DNA of 47,568 bases from Chara braunii (lineage: Eukaryota > Plantae > Charophyceae), in NCBI GenBank assembly GCA_003427395.1, contig BFEA01000027.1, forward strand, positions 461,111 through 508,678, read 5' to 3'. The stretch's first letter is position 1; every line of letters begins with the position of its first letter. Of the stretch, positions 3,823-39,618 are shown one piece after another. The translations under genes and the position numbers were made by a program. The notes under the pieces are model-generated. The model saw only the letters and a program-made list of their open reading frames with translations, made no database searches and was not told where the DNA came from.

Positions 3823-3897
<75 letters not shown>
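3823..3897. repeat. (CT)n microsatellite
   Basis: Pure CT run. Confidence 0.95.
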
Positions 3898-6111: not shown

Positions 6112-6220
6112 GTTGTCCTTCGGGACATCCGTGAACATTGGAACGATACAGAGAAAGAACATTAGCATGGCCCCTGCGCTTTCAAGGATGACACCCACAA
6201 ATCCAGAAATGGTCCATATT
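6112..6220 (+). pseudogene. U6: U6 snRNA pseudogene or variant inside the LANCL intron
   Basis: GTTGTCCTTCGGGACATCCGTGAACATTGGAACGATACAGAGAAAGAACATTAGCATGGCCCCTGCGCTTTCAAGGATGACACCCACAAATCCAGAAATGGTCC matches plant U6 (5' hairpin, ACAGAGA box, AGC triad). It has two 4-nt insertions and no oligo-T terminator. Confidence 0.9.
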
Positions 6221-6404
6221 GCCAAATTTATTATTAAAAAATATATTATATTATATAATATATAATATTTATGTATATCAGTATCCTCAGATCCGAGAGA
6301 TAGATTATCTTTTCTGCCAAAGCACTGGTGGCAGTGTGGGCAGGAGGGACGTTGGACCATAGCTGCCAGACCACTACAGGTAGTGGCAGTGCGGCCACGA
6401 GTGT

Positions 6405-8250: not shown

Positions 8251-8359
8251 GCTATGCTCCAGGTCGACTTCGTGATGATTCGAATCGTTTCAGATTTCTT
8301 AAATACGTGTGCATTGTATGTTGTTTGTGTTTGTTGTTGGTGCTGGAATGGCGAAGCAG

Positions 8360-8883
8360 GGGGCTGTGATCGAAGCAATCATCTCAGGAGGCCGTGCCGG
8401 GGCAGCAAACACCGGATGGCCTTTGATGTACCAGTGGCATGGCACAAGGTACTGGGGCGCTGCCCACGGTCTGGCAGGCATCATGCAAGTCTTGATGCAC
8501 TTTCCCTTGAGCCCCTCCGCAGAGGAGGATGTGAAAGCGACTCTTCGACTGATGATACGGAACCGATTCCCGAGTGGAAACTACCCCTCCAGTGAAGGAA
8601 AATCGCGAGATCTCTTGGTTCATTGGTGCCACGGAGCACCAGGCGTTGCTGTCACAATGGTGACCGCGGCGTCCAAGTACGGGCCTCAGGGAGAAGGGGC
8701 AGAGTTTCTGCAGGCGGCAGTCGAAGCAGCGGATGTGGTCTGGGAAAGAGGGCTCCTCAGGAGAGCTGGCCTCTGCCATGGTGTCAGTGGAAATGCGTAC
8801 GTCTTCCTCTCGCTTTTCAGAGCAACAGGAGAGAAGCGCCACTTGCATCGGGCCCAAGCATTCGCCACATTTCTACGTGACAG
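8360..8883 (+). CDS. LANCL: LanC-like protein (GCR2/GCL family), penultimate exon
   Basis: cag|GGG...GAC AG|gtgagg. Encodes GAVIEAIISGGR...YWGAAHGLAG...VHWCHGAPG...GLCHGVSGNAY...FLRD, with the LanC catalytic His and Zn ligands (WCHG, CHG). Confidence 0.95.
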
Positions 8884-9179
8884 GTGAGGCAACAACTGTA
8901 CGCTGATCTCTCGCAGCCGTGTTTTTTTTTTGTGCCTGCCGAGCCTGTCGTTTGAGAAGTGCATTGGATTCGGTCTTCTTGTAGCTATAAGATTCATACA
9001 TAAGAGCGTGCAACTGAAAAAAAAAAGGGCCTCACCGCGCCGCTCACCAAATGCACAAAAGACAAAAAATTATGGTGGTGCGTCTTTCCATGTTCTAGCT
9101 GAAAATTCATTCTCATTTTGCACAATTGGTGCGCGCGGTGCGGTGAGGCCATAAAAAATATCAGGATAAGAACCGCCTA

Positions 9180-20757: not shown

Positions 20758-21476
20758 ACCACCAGTACCTCACTCAGCTATCGGCTGCGGGCGTTCCCAT
20801 ATACGCGCCGAGTGCCTTTGAGGCGCTTATTTCTTTTTTTTATTTTAATTGCTTCTTTATTGTATGTGGACAGTTGCTTAGGAAGAATTATAGACTGATA
20901 TTCTTTTTTTAGGGGGGGTCGACCAAGGGAAGGCCCGGTTGTTGCGCTAAGGCCGGGCCCCGGTTCTGTAGAGATGACACTACAACAGAAAAAACAATAC
21001 AAGAACAAAGGGAAAAGAAAAAGAAATACACAAACGAAAAAAAAAGAAATACACAGAAGGAAAGTCGCATGGGAGAGAGAGAGAGCGAGAGAGAGAGAGA
21101 GAGCCCTCCCTCTCTCTCTCTCTCTCGTCTCGAAAAAACGAAACGGGAAATGCATCCCGTTTCGTTTTTTCGAGACGAGAGAGAGAGAAAGAGGGAGGGG
21201 CGGCAAGTTCGCCGCGACCCTCCGTGCAGGTCCCCCCCCCCCTCTCTCTCTCTCTGCCGAAGCGGGTAGATTCATCTTCTTGTTTCCGACACAAAGCGGG
21301 AATGATTCCGTTCGTTATTCTTATTTCTTTTCTTTTTCATTTTTCTGTTTCCGTTTTTTTGGTGCATTTCATGGCAACGTTCGGTATGCCTGCGCCCGGT
21401 AGTCCGAGCCTCGGGACGGGTCGGCCTACCGGTCGGCCGAGGCTCGGACTCGATAGCTGCGCCAGGTACTGGTGGT
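20758..21476. mobile_element. Non-autonomous TIR element (ACCACCAGTAC family) with an internal perfect hairpin
   Basis: ttaa|ACCACCAGTACCT...CAGCTATCG ... CGATAGCTGCGCCAGGTACTGGTGGT|ttac; palindrome at 21104-21199. Confidence 0.7.
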
Positions 21477-24480: not shown

Positions 24481-24535
24481 CTAACTGTGCTTGGCTTGCT
24501 TGTGCGATTGAAGAGCAGTTTCGCTTGCAAAACCC
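24481..24535 (-). CDS. HDT: HD2-type histone deacetylase, exon 11 (last coding exon; end of the C2H2 finger)
   Basis: ccag|G GGT TTT...CAC AGT TAG = (R)GFASETALQSHKQAKHS*. Confidence 0.9.
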
Positions 24536-26340
24536 CTGGTCAAGGCAGGCAGGCCACAAAGCGTTCATATTTTCGTCAGCACATGAACGACGAACATGGA
24601 CCAAAAAAGACAAAGCAGCTATACGCCCTTACGCGCAGGCAAACGGATGTACAACATTTAAACTGCGAAAACAGGAGACAATTCTCACGTTTCAAACAGA
24701 CGGTTGAAACGAGTAAATACGAGAAACTAAGGTGGGGGGCAATTCCCGTGCAACAGGCGTTGCCCTACAAAAACGAGACCCTTAGAGATAAATAATAGTG
24801 ACCTATGTCAACATTCACATCCTCAGAACAGCAAAAGTTTTTCAAGTTCATACCTCAAGTACGTGGAAAGCCGCGGGTTCACGTCCTCAGAACAGCAACA
24901 ATTTAAAGTACATTTCAAAGAGTATTATTAACGAGATCCTTCCGAGGGTGTTGAAAGTGATAACACAACTTCCAACTGCAGAATTCATTCGTAGCAGTAT
25001 CTGCATTTTGGTTGTGTCATCGCTTTCCCCGATCTTTACTGCTGGGAGCTTGAGCTAATTCCGTTGGCTTGTGTGTGCTGTGCCTCGGACAGGGACGAGG
25101 TAGGAGAGAGACTAGCAGAGATGGCATGCTTCAGGACGGAAATAAGGCAGGCTCTGGGAAGGGGGGTTGTAGGGCCAGGGACGAAAGTAGATTGTCCAGA
25201 GATCTGATAGGATTTTCCAACAATTTTGCGAGGCTCCGTAACAGCTTCTGTGAACTGTTACGCTTAGTGGGTAGTCCTGTAAAAAAAAACGAGTAATGGA
25301 AGTGTTCAGGCCCGTTCATAGGAGGGCACTAGACTACAGGCTGTGACGCGGAGCTGCAGGGTGAAATGATGCTCCTGCAAAAGAAGCAGGTAAGCCTAGC
25401 GTAAGCAGAGGGTGAGACGGCTACTGCTGGGTAGTCCCAGATCAGTAGGTACGGGAGGTGTGACAAGCCACATTACAGCGGATGTAGTGTGATGAGCGGT
25501 ACAATCCGGTTCATTCTTTAAGCGGGCATTTAGAGCACTTGGAGAAGAAGCTGAAAGGCGGGAGGGAAGCCATCCGTGATATCGGGTCATGGGAGGCAAG
25601 GTAATTTGTGGTAATGGGAGGTGGTAAGAGGTAGGCCCAGGTTGCGGAAGCTTCGGAGGTGAGGCAGTGGAGATGCATAGGCGGTAGGAGGAAGGACGCC
25701 AGCAGGAAGGCGACTTACTTCTGGCCAAGACAACTGTGTTGGTACCGGTTCTGCTAGGTCCTCAACTCCGACTAACGCTCGGGAGGAAGGCAACGGCAAA
25801 GCGCCCTTAAGTGGGTACCGACTGTGCAGGGTCTTCAACATAGAGCAATGCTATAACGATTAGCGATGGGGGAGGCAATGTAGACGTTGCTTTTTTCTTT
25901 GATCATCATTTCTACACCTGAGGTTCCGCCTTAGCTAGGACTGCCACCAAGTTAGAAGCGAGTTTATGACTGCAAGAAGGATTCTTTGTGCGCTGGCTGA
26001 AAGGGCAGGAATAATCGGAGACATTCTGCCACCTCCGTTCGCTGTTTGTTGATACTAAGACGGAGACATTGAGAGGATGAAATACCATTAGTCCAATCGT
26101 CGTGCACTCTTCTTTTTCTCATACTCTTCATTCTTCTTTCTGTTCTCCCAATTCTTCCTGGTGCCAATAGACTGGCATTATCTCTTTGGGTTTTCGCATT
26201 GGGAGTTGACAAAGGGTCATGACATTTATTTCGTGAAACATTCACTTACACGCGTGTTCATTGTGACACCATCGAATAAAGATTCAATAGACACACGACT
26301 TTGCATTCCAGAGGGTCAAGGTCGTGTGACTTCTACTCAC

Positions 26341-26387
26341 CTATTGCATTCTTTGCAGGTGAAGGCCTTCTTCGGTGTGGAAGCGTC
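26341..26387 (-). CDS. HDT: HD2-type histone deacetylase, exon 10
   Basis: tttcag|GAC...AAT AG|gtgagt = DASTPKKAFTCKECN(R); CxxC of the C2H2 finger. Confidence 0.9.
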
Positions 26388-27120
26388 CTGAAAACCAACA
26401 CAAAATGAAAAGTTCAGCACACAGATGGAACCTGTGTTTGACATCATTAAAAACAGATCCAAACATACAACTTTTTGCACTCGTATAAAGGAGGAAAGAC
26501 GGTTCGCACACAAGCACAAGCATTAATCGTTGAAAGCCTACTGTTTGAGAAGTACCAAAAGAACCACCACATCTGCATAACAAGCATTCTCCAACCACTT
26601 CCTCGTTGCCTGGCGACCAGCTGCTCCACGGAAAGGTCAAAACTTCTGCACTTGTCTCCGGATTGCTATAGGGAATACTAACTTGCACTTGCATAGAGAA
26701 CACGAACTAAGTACCAACTTCCACTCGCACTTGCTATTCTGTATACCAACCCGAAGACGAGCTCACACAGATACTTTCGTATATGGAATACGTGTGCTGT
26801 ACCACCCACTCACCCAGATACATTCGTACAAGGAATACGTGTGCTGTTCCACCCCCTCCGGATTTAACTACAATAAACAGGAAGATATCTGATTCCGAAA
26901 AAAAACGGCGAAATAGACATGCCATTGCATTGATATGAAAATACAATCGATCGTTCTATCCTCTCATAGACTGAACAACACATATTAAAGGATATTACAT
27001 TCGATTCAGTTCAAAGACGACTCAGTGCAATTCACATGCACGCTGTCTGTTGCCCCCCTTTTCCTTACTCGATTCCCCATGCTACCGTTGCAGTTTCATC
27101 GTTCCGCAGCGTTACATTAC

Positions 27121-27239
27121 CTTCCCACCAGCAGCCTTCGCAGCATCCTTTGCTGGCTTATCCTTTCCTGCGGGTTTTGCATCCTTGCCGTCAGATTTGT
27201 CCTTGCCTTCAGATTTGTCCTTCTTGCTTCCCTTGCCAT
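27121..27239 (-). CDS. HDT: HD2-type histone deacetylase, exon 9
   Basis: tgcag|AT...AAG|gtaatg = (D)GKGSKKDKSEGKDKSDGKDAKPAGKDKPAKDAAKAAGGK; phases consistent. Confidence 0.88.
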
Positions 27240-28049
27240 CTGCACACATACACGAGGAAGGGGTCAGTCTGCATAACATCATAGTTGGGAACAAGTGCAC
27301 GAATCGCATTATTCAGTATAGACTCGCAGCTGCTACTTGAAGCTAACTTTCAACGCTTCATTCACTCGCCCTCCAGGAGCATAGCCTTCGTGTCTTCTGC
27401 ATTCTCAATAGAAACGATCGGGACGTCTGAACCGCGGTACAGAAGGTCTAGGTCTCTGGTGTACGGTCCAGAGCGTCCGGATGCATCACCCAGACCCCGC
27501 CACCAACAAAAAAACACGACCTTCGGAAAAAAAGATAAAAAAATGAAAAAAGCGATTTATGCAGCATTGCAATACAAAATCTCGTTTGCCTAAACACCAT
27601 GTCGAAATTCGTTGCCAATCCGAGGGAACGACATAGAAACGTTTTTTTTACTCCTTATATAAAACGAGTCTGGCGCAGTTCAGACGCCAGACGCAGATCT
27701 GGCCTGACGTCCGCACCGACCCGGTGCCCGGATTCGGATTTGCCATTATATTCTCCGCTAACCATCGCAATCGTTGTGCTCGGGGTATAACAAAAGCCGA
27801 CGATCATGACTCAAGAGCGTTGGAACCCATGTACAGTTGCAGATAAAGCATCTTACACCCGACCGCGAAGCCGATCAAGAATCCACTGGCGAGGGACTGA
27901 ACACAACATTTTCGCGAGCGATAGAGATTCGGTGTGATTTCCTAGGAAATACACTTTTTTGGATCGAGACAGTGAATCGAGTTACCACACAGTGAATCGA
28001 GACAGTGAATCGAGCTACGACGCAAGGTCATCAACAGGCCATTGGGTAA

Positions 28050-28122
28050 GGAATGCTCAGACTTATTTGGATCTATCATTACTGTCAGGTTAACGAGATT
28101 TAAATCGACATCACTGCATTCC
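28050..28122 (-). ncRNA. Box C/D snoRNA, U79/snoR44-like (copy 1)
   Basis: Terminal stem GGAATGC/GCATTCC, box C GTGATGT, guide AATCTCGTTAA + D' CTGA, C' ATGATA, D CTGA. The guide is antisense to the conserved 25S GGAUUAACGAGAUU. Confidence 0.85.
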
Positions 28123-28261
28123 TTACAACCCGGCTAAATAACAATATTAGCTGGCCACATACGGACGTTTCCTCAAAGAACCTAAAAAAGCCTCGCTAAT
28201 AGCCTTGCCTGCTACATGAAATGATAATAATTTCCCCAAAACACTGAAAGAATCGCTCACA

Positions 28262-28332
28262 GAATGCTCAGACTTGTTTGCATTTATCATGATGGTCAGG
28301 TTAACGAGATGGAAATGAACATCACTGCATTC
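28262..28332 (-). ncRNA. Box C/D snoRNA, U79/snoR44-like (copy 2)
   Basis: Same boxes and stem; guide ATCTCGTTAAC-CTGA. Confidence 0.85.
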
Positions 28333-28380
28333 CAAACAAGAGGTCATCATAACACAAAATCTCTACAGGCCGCTGGGTAC

Positions 28381-28452
28381 GAATTTCGCAGACTAATCTG
28401 CATCTATCATTGCTGTCAGGTTAACGAAATTCGAAATCGGCATCACTACATT
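28381..28452 (-). pseudogene. Box C/D snoRNA, U79/snoR44-like (copy 3, degenerate)
   Basis: Box D mutated to CTGC, a guide substitution (ATTTCGTTAA) and a broken stem. Confidence 0.7.
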
Positions 28453-28569
28453 ACTTAGTCCAATAACCATATCACCTGTTACACAAGAAAATGTTTCCTA
28501 AGAACAGAAAAAAACATTATCTGCTACAAAGAAATTGGTTCCCCTAAAAACTGCTACAGAATCGATCAC

Positions 28570-28642
28570 GGAATGCTCAGACTTGTTTGGGTCACTCATG
28601 ACGATCAGGTTAACGAGATTTAAATGAACATCACTGCATTCC
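28570..28642 (-). ncRNA. Box C/D snoRNA, U79/snoR44-like (copy 4)
   Basis: GGAATGC stem, box C GTGATGT, AATCTCGTTAAC-CTGA, terminal CTGA. Confidence 0.85.
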
Positions 28643-29037
28643 AATCGCATCATTCTTGGAGTAGGGGTCTATGTCATTACCAGCCAGCAAAAGCAGACTT
28701 CTCTCATACATCTCATTCTACGCAAGCATAAACTGTCCCGTGGTCACTTGCACCAGCGAACCCGGAAAGATTCAGTTACCCTCCTCAGCGTCTGTTACTT
28801 ATCCATGCGCGCTAGAATTAAAATATCCCGATCGAAATCACTCGACTGCATCTCAGAGTGGATAGAACTGCTTGTAAGAAGACACATAACCACATGTAAT
28901 CTCTACGTCTTCACGCATAAACGACCTTCACTTGCTGGGCAGGCACTTGATTAGACGAGATCCCTCCAGGGGCATTAATAAAATATGTGACTGCTACAAC
29001 TCTTGATTAGACGTTCTCTGGCGCTCGACTGTTACAA

Positions 29038-29107
29038 TGCTCAGAACAACTACACGAGTTTTCGATCATGGAGTTCTGGATAGCGACGTTTTTATTCATC
29101 ATGGCAC
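29038..29107 (-). ncRNA. Box C/D snoRNA, snR38/snoR38Y-like (copy 1)
   Basis: Box C ATGATGA, guide AACGTCGCTAT + D' CAGA, C' ATGATC, D CTGA. The guide is antisense to 25S CAUAGCGACGUU. Confidence 0.88.
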
Positions 29108-29588
29108 AGTGTCAGCAACCGTTTACGTTTTCATTGTCCTGGAATTTCGCTAAGCCTTTTCCCAGACGATACAATACCTGGAACGCGAGGTAAAAAGGAT
29201 ACTTAAAACTAGCGATGATTGGATAGGCTAATCAAACTCGAAGATGGCCGATGTTCAACGAAATCTATTGAGATAGGTGTGATCTTTATTGTAAGAGGTG
29301 GGGAGCGCTCGATGAGCGAGGGTGGCCCAAAGATTGACCAACCCGAAGGGGACTCCGCATACTTGCAATGGGTAATCGCGAAGACTGCAACACTCAGGCT
29401 TGGGTGTTAAGTGCTCAGCAGGACTTCATGGATTGTTCACAATTGCATACTACAGCGAGACTTGTCCTCTCTAAAACGATTCTGGGATACCGAAGTCATA
29501 TCCCTCCGATTGCGTACCCAGTTCACTTTTCTGGCGTAGGGAAATCATATCCCTCCGATCGCTGGACAGGCGCCTGGATGTAGCTGAA

Positions 29589-29659
29589 GTGCTCAGCGAA
29601 TCTTCACGTGATTTCTATCATCACGTTCTGGATAGCGACGTTTTTAATCATCATGGCAC
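29589..29659 (-). ncRNA. Box C/D snoRNA, snR38/snoR38Y-like (copy 2)
   Basis: GTGC/GCAC stem; ATGATGA...AACGTCGCTATC-CAGA...CTGA. Confidence 0.88.
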
Positions 29660-29712
29660 ACCAGAGACAGCAATCCTTAAACCTAAAGCTACTTTCGCGC
29701 TACGATGCTACA

Positions 29713-29783
29713 GTGCTCAGCAGAATTTCATGAATTCTCGATCATTGAATTCTGTATAGCGACGTTTTGATTCATCATGGCAC
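29713..29783 (-). ncRNA. Box C/D snoRNA, snR38/snoR38Y-like (copy 3)
   Basis: GTGC/GCAC stem; ATGATGA...AACGTCGCTATA-CAGA...ATGATC...CTGA. Confidence 0.9.
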
Positions 29784-29856
29784 CATCGCATCAATGAAGT
29801 CCATTGAGAATGTGTTCTCTCCGATCGATGAGACAAGGTGCCTCGACGTAGCTGCA

Positions 29857-29927
29857 GTGCTCAGCGACACTTCACGAGTTTTCGATCATTCAGTTCTGGA
29901 TAGCGACGTCTTGATTCATCATAGCAC
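29857..29927 (-). ncRNA. Box C/D snoRNA, snR38/snoR38Y-like (copy 4)
   Basis: Same architecture; guide GACGTCGCTAT (G.U at the distal end). Confidence 0.88.
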
Positions 29928-29997
29928 CGCGACGTAAGATTTGCTATCCATCCTACTTCGTTGAAACCTACCGTTACGTTCGCGCTAGGATACTCCA

Positions 29998-30068
29998 GTG
30001 CTCAGCAAAATTTCATGAATTCTCGATCATTGAATTCTGTATAGCGACGTTTTTATTCATCATAGCAC
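29998..30068 (-). ncRNA. Box C/D snoRNA, snR38/snoR38Y-like (copy 5)
   Basis: Same architecture; nearly identical to copy 3. Confidence 0.9.
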
Positions 30069-30534
30069 CTTCGCATCAAAATATATTCAATTGCGAATGT
30101 TCTCGATGTTAAACATAAATCCAAAATTTTCGAACATCGCAACTAGGGGGAACAATAAAGAAAAGCACCGCAATTAGGGGGAACAATCAAGAAAAAAAAA
30201 AAAAAAAAAAAAAAAACAAGAGCGTACTTCTGTTTAGGCCCTTGGATTTTACAGTGCTCAGAAAAGCCAAGAGCGTACCTTTGTTTCGACCCTTCGAGTT
30301 TGCAATCAGCAAAACCTCACAACTTTTCGGTCACTCAATTCTTCATCATGACAGAGTGGCAGCATCTCTTATTTCGCTTATTTCCCCCAACTCCGACCAC
30401 AACCTCCCAACACCCACCCCCCTGCCCCCCCAATTGGCATATTCGTGTTGCAAGCTCCAGTTCTACTTCCGCTTCAGGAGCGCTAACCGATACAACACAC
30501 GGAATGAGAAATCCAATGATGACGATTGTCGTAC

Positions 30535-30631
30535 CTTTCTTGGGCGTCGGCGTTTCCTGGGCTACCTTGGCCTTCTTTTCAGCCTTCGGTGTTTCCACAG
30601 CAGGATTTGGCCTCTTCTTTCCAACAACAAC
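30535..30631 (-). CDS. HDT: HD2-type histone deacetylase, exon 8 (NLS-like)
   Basis: gcag|GTT...AAA G|gtacga = VVVGKKRPNPAVETPKAEKKAKVAQETPTPKK; the GKKRP...TP...KKAK pattern is typical of HD2. Confidence 0.9.
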
Positions 30632-31135
30632 CTGCCATCAGTTCAGTGAAACCGACAAATCCACATCACCAATCGAAATGAGTTTCTCGAATGGGAAAAC
30701 GAACAGCAAACGCAGGTCGGATCCATTTCGTTGTTCAAAACCATTGTCGATTTTCCACAGAATAGTCATCAGGCCAATGTTCTCACCGACAATTTAGAGG
30801 ATTTGCATCAATCAAACAATATTCATAAAAGAGAGAAGCAATCCTACAACCTCGCCATGCCCACCTCGACAAGCCTCTGCATGCACGCTAATCACAGATT
30901 TTCAGGTCCAGGGGAAACGTCTATCATCCAGAGTCCCAATAAGACATGTCTGCACTCAACATAAAGCCTTCAGTTCAGGACGACTGAAGGTATTCGAAAT
31001 TGCAGCAGTTTTTTCAAACGATAAATTACTAATCAACAGCATTCCCAAAACACAGGTACGGATCAACGGCAGCAAATCCTCAAACCTTCGAATTTAACAA
31101 ACTCCTAGAAATAAATCGGTGTTGAAAGAACTTAC

Positions 31136-31276
31136 TGGTTTGGCGAGCAATTCATCCATGTCCTCGCCTTCGTCCGATTCCTCCTCATCGTCATCATCCT
31201 CATCATCATCCTCGTCATCATCCTCATCCTCATCCTCATCATCCTCATCTTCAAACTCCTCCTCGTCCGAATCCTC
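31136..31276 (-). CDS. HDT: HD2-type histone deacetylase, exon 7 (acidic tract)
   Basis: acag|GAG...CCA|gtaagt = EDSDEEEFEDEDDEDE...EDMDELLAKP; 141 nt, phase 0. Confidence 0.92.
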
Positions 31277-31555
31277 CTGTCGCATTACATCACCACGTAA
31301 ACATGTAGAAACAAAAGCATGAGATTCCACAATCGCACAGCAAAACCACACACCGTGCTCACGGGAGGGTGCACAACCACTGATCGGCGCACAAAAACAT
31401 CAGCACCATTCTTCATAGCACATCGAACGTCATAGGCACCACTTACCGCTACAGGACCCGAAAAGGGAACAAGCACATCAAGGGCAGAACTGAGAGATCT
31501 CTTCCCGCATCTATCAACTTTCAACATAGTCATTCCATCTAGCTGACTTCCAATT

Positions 31556-31914
31556 GTGCGTATAAATGACCGGATATGTACATTCCAATCCACTAAAAAC
31601 ACCAGTCCCTCCACCATTGAGTTGAAAATACCCTACACTCCCAAAAAACCGGGAGCAGGGCCCGACGACGGCCGCCGATGATTTTCTAATCGGTGGCCAC
31701 CCTTTCGTTTCGCCCTCCTAAAATGTCGGAGCGCCACACGAGGACTCCCTATTTTTCCAAATGGGGGAGGTACTGTGTTTAAGCGTATTACGCCCACATC
31801 CCACTAGCCTCTATTGTTCATTTCTGAACATCGATATGAATAATTCAGAGTAGTGGGATCTGGCCCTTAACGGGAATATACATACCCTCATCTGAAGAGA
31901 ACGGTGAGGTTCAT
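31556..31914 (+). other. Highly structured insert, probably an organellar group II intron 5' end/domain I
   Basis: Starts with GTGCG. Long-range stem 31575-31586/31873-31884 encloses several hairpins. Most wobble pairs read as G.U on +. Confidence 0.4.
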
Positions 31915-32122
31915 CAACTACAAGAGTGCTCATCAACGTCCCGCTCACTCTCGTGTCAAGACCCATATACCCCAATTCCTACTTCGCAATTAATTAATAA
32001 ATATGTGAAGTCGTCACAACAACTATGGTCATTCCACGTAATTACTTTATCGAATTCGGACTCATGCATTAGAAGGCCGATCAATGACAATCATGCTTTG
32101 AGGCCGATCAATCACAACGGCA

Positions 32123-32205
32123 AAAGCGCTCATCAAGTGTTTAAGTCTGCATAGGAGAAACTTCCTTCAGGTTGAAGACCGAAAATATTTTAATCATCGC
32201 GCTTT
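32123..32205 (-). ncRNA. Box C/D snoRNA, unassigned family, 25S guide (copy 1)
   Basis: AAAGCGC/GCGCTTT stem, box C ATGATTA, guide TTCGGTCTTCAA + D' CTGA, C' ATGCAGA, D ATGA. Antisense to 25S UUGAAG(A/G)CCGAA. Confidence 0.7.
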
Positions 32206-32253
32206 GCATCATCCAAACGCACTAGTTTCGTACACTTTCCACCAACTCAGCTG

Positions 32254-32348
32254 GAGGCGCTCATCAATATTAGGGTAAGTCTGCACAGGAGAGGACGGAT
32301 TCCTCCCCTCGAGGTTGAAGACCGAAGAACATTTAATCATCGCGCTTT
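32254..32348 (-). ncRNA. Box C/D snoRNA, unassigned family, 25S guide (copy 2)
   Basis: Paralog of 32123-32205; guide CTTCGGTCTTCAA is conserved while the spacers diverge; D' reads CTCGA. Confidence 0.6.
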
Positions 32349-32879
32349 CCAACATTTGAACACACATCATTTGCTCTGCCACTGTCAACTCTACTGTGGA
32401 GACGAGTATCATTTGCCAATTCTCTATACACATCATTTTCGCATTCAAAAAGTCACCACAAGATTCACCGAAAACTCGCCATACCCGTAGGCCTCTGGCT
32501 CAAATTCCTTCTTTCGAGTGTTTCGCTATTGAACTCCTTTGGGAATTCGATATCCAACCCACCACACAATACGTGCCCTGAACGAAGGGTAAAAGACAAC
32601 CAAACTAAACCCTCGAACCCTATAATATGAACCAAACAAACAAGCCCTACATATATTGACCCTTTTCTGAACATAGACAATAACCCCCGAGTTTTCAGCG
32701 TTCTCACAGCTTTCACATTACGCTAGGGGGAGCACTAAGAAATCGCTTAACGCTCCATCGTCCACAGGCGAGACAATCTACATATGGCTCAACCTCGACG
32801 AAAGAAACTTAACGCTCCATCGTGTGAAAACAACGTTGGCCATAGGGGAGACCTAGCTACGCATGACGCCAACCGCATA

Positions 32880-32988
32880 AAAAAACTTTGTAATTGTGAA
32901 GTACCATTACGAGCTCAATATATACGAGTGTTATTTTGTGAGATTACCCGGATCTTAAATCATCTACTTGCATTAACCACCCATGCTA
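32880..32988 (+). pseudogene. nad7: NUMT: short, well-preserved mitochondrial nad7 fragment
   Basis: [35 protein letters not shown] matches nad7 [35 protein letters not shown](MDVG); AT-rich organellar codon style. Confidence 0.92.
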
Positions 32989-33201
32989 ACGCGCGCGGGT
33001 CAGAACGAGTCAAATAAGGGCGCGAAGGTACGAAAGAAGGAAAAGATTGGTGTTGCATGCACCCATCAGGAAACTGTTAAGTACACTGCGAGAACAGGGA
33101 TTTTTGAAAGGAGACTTTATACCCTGTCCCCCACAGAATTCAAACACGGCGCGCGTTTTACATAACCACAGCAGCAGTTCGCTAGACGATTACTAAGACA
33201 C

Positions 33202-33298
33202 CACATGAAACTTCACATGAAACTCGACATGAAACTCGACATGAAACTCGACATGAAACTTCACATGAAACTCGACATGAAACTTCACATGAAACTTC
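33202..33298. repeat. 12-bp tandem repeat x8
   Basis: CATGAAACT(TCA/CGA) units. Confidence 0.9.
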
Positions 33299-33687
33299 CC
33301 GAGTTCCGGATGAAAAGGGGAGTTATACATCTGATTGTCAAACGGGAGATCTTCCCTGAATCTTCCCTGACTGGGCAAGTGAACGTCCTGTTTCAAAACT
33401 CGAAACTTAGCGCTAACACATCACCACATTTCATTTGCACCGCACCCTTTGGATTGCGAAGGGCGAAATTTGTCACTTGATCAGACACCATTCACGTGCA
33501 TGCGACCAGATTTATCCTCCACCTCCGCTACAAGAAGTTGCATGCACGCGATTCGTTCGTAGGTGTTACCTTGTTCAAAGAGAACAACCACAGGCACATA
33601 GATACACATCGAAAAACGAGCGAAATCAATTGAACGTTCGGACTTGGAACACACGCTGGGATCGAGAGAATCAGAGCAAGAACTCAC

Positions 33688-33800
33688 ATCCATGTCGTCG
33701 TCGCTATCATCTTCCTCGTCAGAGTCTTTCATCGGCGAGGGCGCCGCTACCTTCGCAGCCTTCTTCGCATCCTTACCGGCTTCGGCTCCTGCTGCAGCAT
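33688..33800 (-). CDS. HDT: HD2-type histone deacetylase, exon 6
   Basis: gtag|AT...GAT|gtgagt = (D)AAAGAEAGKDAKKAAKVAAPSPMKDSDEEDDSDDDMD. Confidence 0.9.
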
Positions 33801-34437
33801 CTACATGCCCATTCAATTGTCACCCCACCCCGTTGCCACACATTCATTAACATTCAGACATGCACAAACAGACAATGAACACGGCATCTTAGTGCCGTAA
33901 CAATACCAGGTAAATGAAGACAGTTTTTTCGAATGCTCAGACACATCCACAAACAGATATTGATTCCGACTCCTGCTCGATTGCTCATAGACATGCACAA
34001 TCACACATTGCTTCAAACTCATAACGACGCATTCGTTCTCAAGGTAAATACGCAAACATAAAGCTCCTGCAATCGAAGTGAGAGATGTTCACATTCAGGA
34101 CGAATGTAGATCATCTACGAGGGAAGATACACGTATGCACAACATGCCTCATCGGAACGACGTTCCAGGGGAACATCAAAAGGGACCTCACACACAGATC
34201 CGTTCAGACATTCCATAGGTCATAAAACTAGCACGACCTCAGAAACGATAACAGTTCTGCAATTGTCAAGGAAATAACGCAGTTGCTCATTCCAAACTCC
34301 GCCCAACCTCATGCTTGAAAATGATCGGAGCAAGACGCGCTGTTTAAGAGCTCAGTCAAGAAATAAAGAGATATAAAGCACTCCGACCACGTTACGTAAT
34401 TAAACATTAGAGACCTTGAAGAGACGACTTCACTCAC

Positions 34438-34575
34438 CAGCTTTAGCAAGCTTTCCATTCTCCTTCGCTGCAGCTTTAACATCCGCAGCAGCCTTCGATT
34501 TGTCCTTGCCGTCCTTCGACTCCTTCACATCCTTCTTCTCCTCCTTTACTTTCCCAACTTGTTTGGCCTTCACTT
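34438..34575 (-). CDS. HDT: HD2-type histone deacetylase, exon 5
   Basis: acag|AA...GCT G|gtgagt = (E)VKAKQVGKVKEEKKDVKESKDGKDKSKAAADVKAAAKENGKLAKA. Confidence 0.9.
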
Positions 34576-35354
34576 CTGTGCAAGCACAAAAAATCATAGA
34601 GCGGTTATTACGTATATCAGGTCCTTTGCACAGCCGAGTGCAGGAGCGCCACGCAGACAAAACACGAAAAACCAAACCAGACTCACACCAACTGCGGAGA
34701 CGAGTTAAACGACGATTCGGTTACATTTTCGCTCAATACATTTTGAGAAGGGAATCTCAGCAGTGCCTGCAGACTGAACTTGAAAATTCCACGCCTGCAA
34801 TTCGTCGAGAAAACATTCACGGGAAGGAGAAATCCACGCAGACGGACGTCATCCGTCTCTCCACGCATTTACCGATAAACTCGAGGTATGGCCGTAGCAG
34901 ACAATTAACTAGTCTTTACCAACTCTAAGCACATGAGCACGAAACAAGTCGCAACAAGACACATTTTCTAGATCACACCCTTCCCGGCCTCACAGACAGA
35001 ACAACAATAGTCACATCACCACCTGAAAGCCGTCTTCCGCAGCAACCCCCTTAAAATCCAGCGACTCAAACTGTAGTTGTAGATCCATATACATCTGGGT
35101 CCAAGGCCCTCCTCAGTGCTAGCACGAATAAGAACCCGCGACCGTGGACTAGAGAGGCAAGACTCAAAACCACAATAGACAGAGAACGCGGTGTTCAAAA
35201 ATGTAAAACCATACCGTTCGTGATTTCCACCCAACCCCACCAAGGCTCAAGTGTCCAGTTGGACACATACCACACACCCCAGCAAAAATTCCGGAAACCA
35301 AACACCTTAAAAAAATAAAATTGTACTGGTAAAATCCAGTATAGGAACACTGAC

Positions 35355-35407
35355 CTTCTTTAATATCTTTGACGTCCTCTTCGTCCAAACCCATCTCTTC
35401 CTCGTCA
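35355..35407 (-). CDS. HDT: HD2-type histone deacetylase, exon 4 (follows the AC acceptor)
   Basis: TCCTTGACggaggtcttcAC|T GAC...GAA G|gtcagt = (S)DEEEMGLDEEDVKDIKE. Confidence 0.88.
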
Positions 35408-36195
35408 GTGAAGACCTCCGTCAAGGATAAATTGCCAAAATTATTACGTTATAAACAAAACCACACCACATACATGACCTGCAGGCAATTTCTACATGCT
35501 CCTACGGATATAACTTCGAAATCGTTTTGACAACAAATATCCACAAACCAACCGACTTCCGGTTCCCACACCCACTTCCTCTCCGATTTTCTTCATCAAC
35601 TCCCCCTTCTTCCGCCTCACCCAGCCAAGCGTCTGAAAGCCCCGCTGCATTCATAAATTCGTCTGCCAGATCTCCCACAACATTCCGTACAAAAATCGGC
35701 TACACACCACCTCTCCCACATCTGCAATATTTCAAGGTACGAAGGGAACCTTCACGACAACATTGCCCATGTGCCGGCCTGTGACAATGTAAAGACCGCA
35801 TCCATCTAACAGTAAAAGCCACGCCTAGATACCCTAACCAAAATGAAAAGCGAAAAAGCCATAGCAGAATTAATGAAGGGTTCGTCCCCGATCCTCGCCA
35901 AAACATTCATCGTCACCGAAAATAACGGACAGAAGTTATCTCCACATTCCTAAGACACGAGATCCACAATCTATATAACACATTACCCATGTTCACTAGG
36001 CGAACCACCACCACACCAACTTATCATTGTTTGTGCTAGAAAAACACAAGCAGCACAACGATTTCAAATGCGTAAACGGTGCGATCTCAAACAGCGAAGG
36101 CCACCTACCACACATCCAAAACAAAACATGCAGACAACAAACAACACAATGATTTCAAATGGGCAACCGGTACAGTACACTCGTTCAAAGGATAT
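35408..36195 (-). other. U12-type (minor spliceosome) AT-AC intron
   Basis: 5' site ATATCCTT at 36195-36188, branch site TCCTTGAC at 35427-35420, AC acceptor at 35409-35408. Splicing here restores the reading frame. Confidence 0.92.
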
Positions 36196-36410
36196 CTGGA
36201 CGCCAATGTGCTTTCGAAACTCTCATAGCCAATAACATAAACCCCCGTCGATCCTGAGTGAGACAACTTAAATGTCCGATCGAACACCAAGTCCAGCTGA
36301 AACTGATCCGTCTTCCCCTTCACCAGCGTGCCGATGACCCACTTCTTGTCTTCATGCTCAACGCTGAGAACCGCTCTCTCATTGTCCTTCGGGTTGTGAC
36401 CAAGCGCCAC
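36196..36410 (-). CDS. HDT: HD2-type histone deacetylase, exon 3 (nucleoplasmin-like core)
   Basis: tcag|GTG...TCC AG|atatcctt = VALGHNPKDNERAVLSVEHEDKKWVIGTLVKGKTDQFQLDLVFDRTFKLSHSGSTGVYVIGYESFESTLAS; HD2 motifs IGTL, DLVFD..F.LSH and V..GY. Confidence 0.95.
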
Positions 36411-36950
36411 CTGATACACACCAAGCCATGCGCAACAATAAAGCAGCAATAAGACGGGCATGTGCTTACCAGACTCAATGATACACAGATTAACCACGCT
36501 GCTCTTAAAAGGATTTAGATCATCCATCCACACGTAGGAGTGTCTGAGTTCAAAGAGCATAGACCAGGCTAAGCATCCTCTGCAGGTTGGTTTCCATGAG
36601 AACCATCTCCTTCCGTACTAAAAACCTCGGCACTGACATCAATAATCGACAGACCAGGACAATGAGATCTGTCGCCATCCGTACGCAAAGAGTATGCCGA
36701 TTCCCAGCAGGCACCAACGATAAGAGGGTTGAAGCACCGTCTACCAATAGAAAACTCAGTCTGATCTTAAAGCCATAGATATATAGCACCCAAGTGCCAG
36801 CTCCTAGGATTTCCATTGGGCGTCACTGCAGTTCCAACTACACACTGCAACCGCTAAACCTTCATGTCGATTACATTCAGATCTCGCCCGACGCAACATA
36901 GCCGAAACCAGACGTCCATCTCTCCGGAGATGCAAACGATGATAGTACTT

Positions 36951-37073
36951 AGTGGCAGTGGAGTACAACACTCAGAGAAGATAACGGCGGAAGTGAATGG
37001 AAGCTATGGAGTCAGTGGCAGTGGAGTACAACACTCAGAGATAACGGCGGAAGTGAATGGAAGCTATGGAGTC
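36951..37073. repeat. ~62-bp tandem duplication
   Basis: AGTGGCAGTGGAGTACAACACTCAGAG(AAG)ATAACGGCGGAAGTGAATGGAAGCTATGGAGTC x2. Confidence 0.9.
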
Positions 37074-37493
37074 CAACGTTCAAAGCAGCGCGACGAAAGA
37101 CGCCCACAGGACAGGACACTTGAAACCAGGCCACCACCACGTCCCGCGTGCATGTGCTCGATACCCTACCTAACCAGAGACAGAAACATACATGAACATG
37201 CAGAGTCCCTCGAGACCTTAACTTTTCCAGTTCTATCAAGTCAAACACGATCCCCACAAGTAATGTTCACGAAACCCTCACTCGTAAAACAAGAAATCTC
37301 TTTTTCAGTCCGTGATAGACAACCTCGCCAAATGGCCGACGAATGATGCATTCAATCCGCGGTTTTCTTTGCGACGCAACTTAAATCATGATGCTTCCAA
37401 CACGAAGCAGTCGCGCTACAGTTAACAAGTAGAGCCGAACTCGTACCGATAATAAGCCGCCGATAGCTAAATCTAGCCACCGGACATTATAGA

Positions 37494-37954
37494 GGCTGAC
37501 ATACTGCGAGTCCCTCTGCAAAAGAGGGAGTGCCTACGGGAACACATACAGTTGCTGCATGGCTGTCTTCAGCTCGTGTCGTGAGATGTTGGGTTGAGAC
37601 CCGCAACGACCGCAACCCTCGTTTCTACCGTCTTCAGCCGAATACAACGCCCGGTCATTACAGCTGCATCTGCGGCAACTTCCCGACCAGATGCAGCAAT
37701 GATGACCAGGCGCTTTATTCGGATGAAGACGGTACTTGCCATTATGGAACTCTAGAGAGACTGCCGGTGATAATCCGGAGGAACGTAATATTGACGTCAA
37801 GTCAGCATAGCATACCCCTTATACATCCTGGGAGACACACGTGCTACAATGGCCGGGACAAAGAGTCGAAACCTTGCGAAGGCGAGCTAACCTCAAAACC
37901 CAGTCTCAGTTACGATTGCAGAGTGCAACTCGGCTACATCAAAAGGCGGAATCG
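37494..37954 (+). pseudogene. rrn16: NUPT: plastid 16S rRNA fragment, interrupted by a MITE
   Basis: GCATGGCTGTC-TCAGCTCGTG...CGCAACCCTCG...AGACTGCCGGTGATAA-CCGGAGGAA...ACACACGTGCTACAATGGCCGGGACAAAG; the TGGCCGGGACAAAG segment is plastid-type. Confidence 0.88.
37628..37732. mobile_element. 105-bp MITE (copy 4) inserted in the NUPT
   Basis: ta|CCGTCTTCAGCCGAATA...TATTCGGATGAAGACGG|ta. Removing it restores CCCTCGTTTC-TA-CTTGCCA of 16S. Confidence 0.93.
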
Positions 37955-38955
37955 ATAAAACTCGCATATGGCCATTCACCCACTTCTCGAATCGACCCAT
38001 AACCTGACCTTAATACGTCATTAATCTCTGGATGGAGCATTGGAAACGATTCGCGTAACCTAAACTCACTCGGACGACCTCGACCAATTGAACCCCTGCA
38101 AACTTATAACCTGTTGCTGCTGTATGGGCGACATTCAGCCGATCTGCGGGGCGGCCCAAATACAAAGCGAAAACCTGGAGGTCATCAACTACAATTGAAG
38201 AAGCACACGCGGCACGGGCCGCATAACAGAAGGCCTTAGTAAAAGCATAACGAAGCTGCTGATACAGTCGCATTACATAGCACAGCACATGCAACAATCT
38301 CTGTTTCAGTAAACAAACCAAACAGCCTCACCATTTATGTGCTCAAGGATCGTATGTTGGCTTAACATACATCGAAGAGATCAACGAGATAGCACATCAG
38401 ATCCTTCATTTGGAAATTAACCCGGTCTATACACATTTCAAGCAATCGTTCAAAGTGTGTCACAATTATGGCTGGATAATTCATTTGATGCGAACAGGCT
38501 TTCAAGAATACTGCACATCCAGTCTATAATCTAGAGATCAAACGTAACAACAACTTACATTCGTGTACAGAAATACTGAGCAAAATCGACGATGCCTACG
38601 ACACAAACAACGTTCTTCGCTTCCACCATCATCATCGTCGAAAACCGATCTCCACTCAACCTATATATCCATCATCATCCTCGAACGATCCACTGACCAT
38701 CCACTATTACCGTTAGCGTACTCATGATGAACTGGTTCTAATAACTCCAGCGTCATCCGCACACACCGTACAGAAAATACGCCCGCGATAGATCCCGCTC
38801 CTCGTCGGGAGCCGTGAATAAACCGTACCCCGAGCACGCCAACTCTTCCGCTTCCATGTCGAACAGCACAACCTGAAAAACCAGCTCCCTATAGAACGCT
38901 TAAGCGCGGCTGGCAGTCGATAGCTAGAGACACCACAAACTGCATTCCAAATCTG

Positions 38956-39060
38956 CCGTTTCCCCCCAACTACAACGCACAGTCGTTACAGCTGTATTTA
39001 GACTGAAAGATGCCCCAAGTAGAGCTATAATGACCGTGCGCTCTATTCGAGGGCAGAAGG
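38956..39060. mobile_element. 105-bp MITE (copy 5, diverged)
   Basis: tg|CCGTTTCCCCCCAACTACAACG...GCTATAATGACCGTGCGCTCTATTCGAGGGCAGAAGG|ta. Confidence 0.8.
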
Positions 39061-39159
39061 TACCAGTGGTCGCAAACCTGTGAGAGTTGCTAAGATGCCC
39101 CTACCGTTCGATGTTCACCCTAACCTAACTGTAACGAAGGAAAATCAGACTTCACATAC

Positions 39160-39233
39160 CTGTGACAAGTGCAGGTGCGTTCCTTCTTCAGGCGTGACTG
39201 TAACCGGCTTCGACCCCCCCGGCACCTCGATCC
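39160..39233 (-). CDS. HDT: HD2-type histone deacetylase, exon 2
   Basis: tgcag|GG ATC...CAG|gtatgt = (G)IEVPGGSKPVTVTPEEGTHLHLSQ; conserved HLSQ. Missed by the ORF track. Confidence 0.93.
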
Positions 39234-39605
39234 CTGCAAGGCGCGACCATTTCAGCATCCAATCAATCACACAGACGAAATCAGAAGTCCATCAGCATCA
39301 TCGAAAGAATTGAACCACTCCAGTTCAGCTCGGGGCGAGCGTCATAAACCTCCCATAGCCGCTTTGTGTGTGCAAACGATCTGAACACAATCAACTCTCT
39401 GATTGTCAGCCAGTCATCCAACAACCATGGAAATTTGCATGCGCTCACTGGCAAACATCCGCCCTTAAAATAACCTAAGACAATCGTAAGGCAGCAATAG
39501 TCGACAAATCGAGGAGCCGACCTTGTCATTGCAATTGCATTACTGAATAGATAGACACAGAGACGCATATTCGACAACATGCTTGGAGGGGTAGGCACGG
39601 CTTAC

Positions 39606-39618
39606 CCCAGGCCATCAT
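39606..39618 (-). CDS. HDT: HD2-type histone deacetylase, exon 1 (13 coding nt)
   Basis: ATG ATG GCC TGG G|gtaag = MMAW(G), equivalent to the MEFWG first exon of plant HD2 genes. The 11 exons sum to 1065 nt = 354 aa + stop. Confidence 0.88.

Follow-up and report, generated by a model that had tools for sequence, protein, structure and literature searches.

The window analysed here, a stretch of 47,568 nucleotides (nt) of the Chara braunii genome (contig BFEA01000027.1, positions 461,111 to 508,678), contains a gene of the HD2/HDT family on its minus strand, and two introns of this gene hold eleven units with the features of small nucleolar RNAs (snoRNAs) of the box C/D class, arranged in three tandem families, A, B and C. 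An earlier note, made from the letters alone, had proposed eleven such units (4+5+2) in introns 8 and 6, all in the sense orientation of the gene, and their coordinates and minus-strand placement were confirmed. The gene and the introns of interest are as follows.

24487–39618, minus strand: HD2/HDT gene, in-frame model with 11 coding exons
39618–39606, 39233–39160, 36410–36196, 35407–35355, 34575–34438 and 33800–33688, minus strand: HD2 exons 1–6
31276–31136, 30631–30535, 27239–27121, 26387–26341 and 24535–24487, minus strand: HD2 exons 7–11
35408–36195, minus strand: intron 3, U12-type (AT-AC)
31277–33687, minus strand: intron 6, 2411 nt, phase 0, GT-AG; hosts family C
27240–30534, minus strand: intron 8, 3295 nt, phase 1, GT-AG; hosts families A and B

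In this exon model, the reading frame remains open from position 39618 down to a stop near 24487, and the encoded protein has the layout by which HD2/HDT proteins are recognized, namely a nucleoplasmin-like domain, acidic tracts and a C-terminal C2H2 finger, the latter being interrupted by a phase-2 last intron. The exons were searched one by one rather than as a spliced protein. Exon 3 matched the Pfam NPL domain (E 1.6e-11) as well as PDB structures of the N-terminal domain from Arabidopsis HDT1-4, and its relatives include HD2 proteins of plants and algae. The N-terminus reads MMAWG instead of MEFWG, and two word-indexed protein searches with an algal HD2 query returned almost no matches. 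In addition, the intron positions agree with those of land-plant HD2 genes, including the U12-type intron 3 and the last intron. A tree built on exon 3 placed the gene loosely with streptophyte algae (support 84/81), a weak and unsettled position given by only 64 residues. The N-terminal domain of HD2 proteins is a nucleoplasmin-fold histone chaperone, and their intrinsic deacetylase activity is disputed. Sphagnum fallax and Diphasiastrum share the AT-AC ends of intron 3, and in Adiantum it is GT-AG with a U12-like donor; being minor and slow, and located upstream of the introns that hold the snoRNAs, intron 3 could influence output. In the HD2 gene of Sphagnum balticum, a U12-type donor motif stands at position 3860 within annotated exon 3, and the public model may miss an AT-AC intron.

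Removal of intron 8 is recorded directly in RNA sequencing (RNA-seq) data. The joint 27239/30535 was found in 86 raw reads of one stranded polyadenylated (poly(A)) run, on the minus strand, and again in three further RNA-seq contig sets; the junctions between exons 7 and 8, 8 and 9, and 9 and 10 are all present. Intron 6 is probably spliced out as well, as indicated by the frame of the gene model, its GT-AG sites and the absence of poly(A) read depth across 31404–32460. Intron 8 thus contains several units within one spliced intron, in the sense orientation of the host, which is the arrangement of an intronic polycistronic cluster, and one HD2 primary transcript carries both the mRNA and the guides. 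The units nearest the splice sites stand 470–1350 nt away from them, and assembly is therefore unlikely to require that the branch point lie at a set distance. The individual units, two decayed copies and one isolated guide sequence are located as follows.

28571–28641, minus strand: A1, orthologue of U30; predicted target of the D′ guide 25S Am2322 (Arabidopsis numbering)
28383–28453, minus strand: A2, degenerate copy of U30 with a weak stem and CUGC as D box; guide change compatible with G-U pairing
28262–28332, minus strand: A3, orthologue of U30
28051–28121, minus strand: A4, orthologue of U30; Rfam snoU30 34.6 bits, E 0.005, under gathering
29996–30070, minus strand: B1, C/D unit with D′ box CAGA; predicted target of the D′ guide 25S Gm2849
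29855–29929, minus strand: B2, C/D unit
29711–29785, minus strand: B3, C/D unit
29587–29661, minus strand: B4, C/D unit
29035–29107, minus strand: B5, C/D unit
32254–32348, minus strand: C1, C/D unit; C box AUGAUUA, D box AUGA, extra base in D′; guide predicts 25S Am1484
32123–32205, minus strand: C2, family C unit; D′ box canonical
30306–30346, minus strand: decayed relic of family B, of which the 3′ half is left and the guide is gone; E 8e-4
29410–29452, minus strand: decayed family B relic, 3′ half; E 1.5e-3
24927–24937, minus strand: exact 11-nt U30 guide with neither a C nor a D′ box; lies in the last intron, some 400 nt ahead of the 3′ splice site

Terminal C and D boxes capable of forming a kink-turn are present in 10 of the 11 units, the exception being A2. 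The C/D pairs are GUGAUGU/CUGA in family A, canonical in family B and AUGAUUA/AUGA in family C, where the two departures compensate each other, as U-A takes the place that a G-C pair usually has in the kink-turn stem. A short terminal stem surrounds the C and D boxes of the units, weakly in A2, and 92% of its cells are paired in family B (+1 register). The internal D′ and C′ boxes are clear in families A and B and weak in family C, whose C′ is poor. The proposal that the units have boxes and, apart from one degenerate copy (A2), a terminal stem was confirmed, with the caveat that the internal boxes of family C are weak or non-standard.

The proposal that cores are more conserved than spacers was borne out. 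Among the five copies of family B, pairwise identity is 1.0 in the C and D boxes, 0.96 in the guide and 0.94 in C′, compared with 0.66 in the D arm and 0.32–0.40 in the flanks; family A behaves alike, with a guide identity of 1.0 among its three intact copies and flanks at 0.31–0.37. The guide substitutions in A2, B2 and C2 all retain G-U pairing. Furthermore, a second strain shows six differences within the units, none of them in a guide, and the one that falls in box C keeps a purine. Identity of unit plus spacer among copies is 0.63–0.86, with B1/B3, B2/B4, A1/A3 and A2/A4 as the closest pairs, a pattern that fits single and then two-unit tandem duplications.

Models built from the units recovered exactly 4+5+2 copies and the two family B relics in the 47.6-kb window. 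It might be supposed that a transposon or dispersed repeat left the units behind as remnants, or that they are tandem repeats without function that resemble snoRNAs by chance, and the absence of any gathering-level Rfam snoRNA match in the window, where the best match is snoU30 at 34.6 bits against a threshold of 45, would agree with such an origin. Against it, the same models found no copies of A, B or C outside the HD2 introns in the window, conservation is limited to boxes, stems and guides, and rRNA-antisense 11-mers linked to boxes occur seven times on the sense strand of the gene, compared with none on either strand in the 32 kb outside. Family A, moreover, has homologues in the U30s that land plants carry in their HD2 genes. 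A repeat or chance origin is accordingly regarded as extremely improbable for the array as a whole, and for family A it is already largely refuted.

Guide pairing was computed against the large-subunit (LSU) ribosomal RNA (rRNA) of other eukaryotes, using 114 eukaryotic ribosomal DNA (rDNA) loci fetched by target words of families A and B. The antisense element that ends at D′ forms anchored duplexes of 10–13 base pairs (bp) with LSU rRNA, compared with a shuffle mean of about 8, and per-copy P values are 0–0.08. These duplexes with the 25S rRNA of other eukaryotes agree with the original suggestion of an rRNA-antisense guide in the units. No D-arm guides were found, anchored pairing there being 7–8 bp and variable between copies. 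By Arabidopsis landmarks, family A is directed at 25S Am2322, which is the mapped AtU30 site in Arabidopsis 25S (human Am3825; PMC8583080). Family B is predicted to target 25S G2849, a position supported by 15 of 15 landmarks in 76 of the 114 rDNA loci, and family C 25S A1484. For family C, a search of whole units against whole loci, unbiased by the target words, placed the longest duplex at one LSU site in most covering loci, which precedes that of U30 by about 830 nt; the antisense segment is invariant in C1 and C2 and ends one base before D′. The predicted family B and family C sites are two candidate new 25S methylation sites.

Several other assignments were considered and rejected. Family B is not snoR38Y, as its target is G2849 and not Gm2816. 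An identity of Drosophila Gm3113 with the family B site was rejected, the fly map having no 2′-O-methylated nucleotide between Gm3348 and Cm3412. A primary role of C2 as a guide of U2 small nuclear RNA (snRNA) was also discarded, the match being 30 bits against a gathering threshold of 60, present in C2 only and out of register. Two further antisense segments were noted on the minus strand. Within a family B relic, 11 nt at 29430–29440 are antisense to another conserved rRNA site, off the D-box register and within chance expectation. In the last intron, at 25881–25909, a perfect C box is followed by 13–14 nt antisense to the 25S sequence that adjoins the family B target on its 3′ side; neither D′ nor D box was found in this element, which has a weak Rfam snoZ188 match (E 2.1) and may be due to chance.

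Some observations on the guides and on expression weigh against the reading of the units as functional snoRNAs. Pairing was evaluated on the rDNA of other eukaryotes, with loci chosen by the A and B words and hence unbiased only for C. The P values of single guides are modest (0–0.08 anchored, up to 0.45 unanchored). G2849 and A1484 are absent from the methylation maps of Arabidopsis, tomato, tobacco and Drosophila. In family C, the internal boxes are weak and the 3′ arm of the unit offers a pairing partner for the guide. Finally, no mature RNA was seen in the poly(A) or unlabelled libraries, which are unsuited to mature snoRNAs, and intron coverage there is low and shows no peaks on the units. 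Families B and/or C could be C/D RNAs that are stable but leave the predicted sites unmethylated, acting as orphans, as rRNA chaperones or, for C2, as a guide of U2 snRNA. That the predicted sites are unmapped elsewhere, that the C′ and D′ boxes of family C are non-standard and that C2 weakly matches Rfam snoU2-30 (RF00493; 30 bits, E 0.005) would all suit this view. However, the U2-like stretch comprises 7–8 nt, occurs in C2 only and is off register with the D box, while the rRNA-antisense segment has the same sequence and the same spacing to D′ in both C copies, and the five B copies share the geometry of U30. This alternative is therefore considered improbable.

The identity of family A was addressed with a hidden Markov model (HMM) built from four land-plant U30s only and then run on the window. 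A1, A3 and A4 were detected at E values of 9.8e-9, 1.1e-7 and 7.4e-7 (a range of 1e-8 to 7e-7) and A2 at 0.066, while family B reached 0.003–0.02 from shared boxes. On these sequence matches, family A is identified as orthologous to U30 (snoU30, RF01283). In the Rfam search proposed in the earlier note, family A matched snoU30 at 22–34.6 bits, below the gathering threshold of 45, and no unit attained a gathering score. This threshold misses divergent members, because the U30s of Selaginella (34.8 bits) and Calypogeia (43.2 bits) also score below it. In the terminal stem of U30, five cells carry two-sided changes across eight sequences.

Eight other HD2 loci were compared, those of Marchantia paleacea, Calypogeia fissa, Sphagnum fallax, Sphagnum balticum, Selaginella, a Diphasiastrum paralogue, Adiantum and Closterium, a set that includes no seed plant. 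U30 was found in the last, finger-splitting HD2 intron of Marchantia paleacea (46.6 bits), Calypogeia fissa (43.2), Sphagnum fallax (58.1) and Selaginella (34.8), two of the four scoring above Rfam gathering. It was not found in the HD2 genes of Sphagnum balticum, Adiantum, Diphasiastrum (one paralogue) and Closterium, a single HD2 gene having been searched in each. Families B and C were found in none of the eight loci. The last HD2 intron of Marchantia paleacea also carries a second, 3′-truncated U30 copy (L117, 6903–6953), so tandem duplication and decay of U30 happened there too. In Arabidopsis, AtU30 and HDT1 both lie on chromosome 3, which is only a lead.

In the Chara gene, U30 resides in intron 8, two introns upstream of the land-plant position in the last intron. 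The exact 11-nt U30 guide at 24927–24937 would be expected about 0.0007 times by chance in the last intron, and full-length models gave no significant match at this place (E 0.1 and 0.59); whether it is a relic of the land-plant U30 position is about an even bet. An independent arrival of U30 in algal and land-plant HD2 genes would be less economical than an old linkage. The apparent conservation of the U30–HD2 linkage, which was not part of the first reading of this locus, is the strongest point of the present analysis. The expectation that an HD2 gene had not been described as a host of a snoRNA cluster was upheld in the literature searched, where no paper naming HD2 as a snoRNA host or linking U30 to HD2 was found; an older mention in the rice or Chlamydomonas work is possible.

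The retention of this linkage across an alga, liverworts, a moss and a lycophyte could mean, in line with the earlier note, that the array is a selected unit of co-regulation and dosage, in which HD2 transcription sets the level of a nucleolar chromatin factor together with three guide families and extra copies raise methylation. Copies that are 63–86% identical over unit plus spacer and yet have intact guides indicate that most of them are still under selection, which would favour this explanation. Nevertheless, the sporadic distribution described above, with B and C in none of the eight other HD2 loci and U30 missing from four, speaks against it, as do the decayed copies (the broken A2 and the two B relics) and the sufficiency of a single U30 copy in Arabidopsis. 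In addition, constrained drift accounts for snoRNAs in broadly expressed hosts (PMC3511168). A tuned dosage unit thus appears doubtful, and the earlier designation of the locus as operon-like was overstated: snoRNAs within introns of ribosome-biogenesis genes, tandem clusters of paralogues among them, are a known general pattern (PMC2875012, PMC7671301), and two of the three families are confined to the Chara locus among the HD2 genes compared.

Altogether, the units are very probably functional intron-encoded box C/D snoRNA clusters, a reading supported by the conservation of boxes, stems and guides while the flanks are at background. In the proposed sequence of events, the HD2 pre-mRNA is spliced, as recorded for intron 8, and the excised introns would be cut by an endonuclease and trimmed to RNAs of 60–95 nt, which would be protected by assembly with Snu13, Nop56, Nop58 and fibrillarin, as in the known pathway. 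The 10–13 nt before D′ would then pair with pre-25S rRNA and direct 2′-O-methylation five bases upstream of D′, at Am2322 for family A, at G2849 for family B and probably at A1484 for family C; the pairing is seen in the computed duplexes. U30 would be an old passenger of streptophyte HD2 genes that was tandemly copied in this lineage, to which the arrival of families B and C appears to be specific. Local duplication and decay most likely explain the number of copies better than a tuned dosage does, boxes, stem and guide being maintained by selection. As a more speculative scenario, which we consider unlikely, U30 would have been tied to HD2 from a time before land plants because HD2 has to be co-expressed with the Am2322 guide, and in this alga it would have moved from the finger-splitting last intron to intron 8, leaving a relic behind; the HD2 introns would then have gained two families that put lineage-specific methyl marks on 25S rRNA, at G2849 and A1484.

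These results may be of broader significance. A eukaryote-wide study found the intronic location of snoRNAs to be unstable over long times and proposed constrained drift (PMC3511168). Against this background, U30 and HD2 would form a long-lived snoRNA–host pair in plants, in which the host was kept and the intron changed, and could serve as a test case for co-expression versus constrained drift. Two predicted rRNA methylation sites are put forward that are absent from the plant and fly maps examined. The record of U30 is extended to a lycophyte, Selaginella, where a survey of 24 species had scored it absent, as in Physcomitrella (PMC5122169). Furthermore, deletion or silencing of HD2 in bryophytes, Selaginella and this alga may also remove U30 and thereby confound nucleolar phenotypes.

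Other features of the window are less directly connected with the array. On the plus strand, antisense to the gene within HD2 intron 2, positions 37456–37946 hold a degraded fragment of small-subunit rRNA of organelle or bacterial type, interrupted by an insertion of 112 nt (Rfam 143 bits), probably an insertion of organellar DNA. A copy resembling U6 snRNA at 6115–6223 (plus strand, 57.9 bits) has two 4-nt insertions and is probably a pseudogene. The long open frame at 8309–8887 (plus strand) presumably resembles part of a LanC-like (GCR2/LANCL) protein. Finally, 21100–21200 contains a near-perfect inverted repeat flanked by GA/CT with many sub-threshold microRNA models, likely a simple-repeat hairpin.

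Comparable arrangements have been described in several systems. In rice, Chlamydomonas and Ostreococcus, snoRNAs form intronic polycistronic clusters with an enrichment of ribosome-biogenesis hosts, which reach 33% in Ostreococcus (PMC7671301, PMC8351944). The polycistronic intronic layout is the same as that of the HD2 array; in the texts searched HD2 was not found named among these hosts, and the B and C guides were not found in Ostreococcus sequences or in a plant family survey (first 200 files). In Arabidopsis, U60 lies within fibrillarin introns (PMC2685112), and clusters of tandem paralogues include snoR155a/b/c in RPL23A, snoR100a/b/c in At5g08180 and snoR87-2a/b in eIF3G (PMC2875012). 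Like the HD2 array, these paralogue clusters repeat a guide on the sense strand within a single intron, the host being a gene for translation or ribosome biogenesis; they are H/ACA snoRNAs in 2–3 copies, whereas the HD2 array comprises C/D units of three families in 11 copies. At the level of single guides, snoR38Y/snR38 (25S Gm2816) resembles family B as a C/D guide whose target is likewise a G of that part of domain V, but the G2849 target of family B lies 33 nt downstream and the guides do not overlap. The guide of grass snoR160a, of the AtsnoR147 type (25S Cm1479, a target read from D-box spacing), overlaps the rRNA stretch of family C; it precedes box D, whereas the family C guide stands before D′ and, moved by five bases, points to A1484, and no homology between the two was shown. 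The D′ guide, target, similar size and terminal stem of snoU30/SNORD30 (Rfam RF01283, clan CL00052) are shared by family A, which differs in having four tandem copies instead of one, the C box GUGAUGU, a sub-gathering score and a location in intron 8. Taken together, these comparisons place the tandem intronic snoRNA architecture itself among known arrangements; its link with an HD2 host was not found reported in the literature searched.

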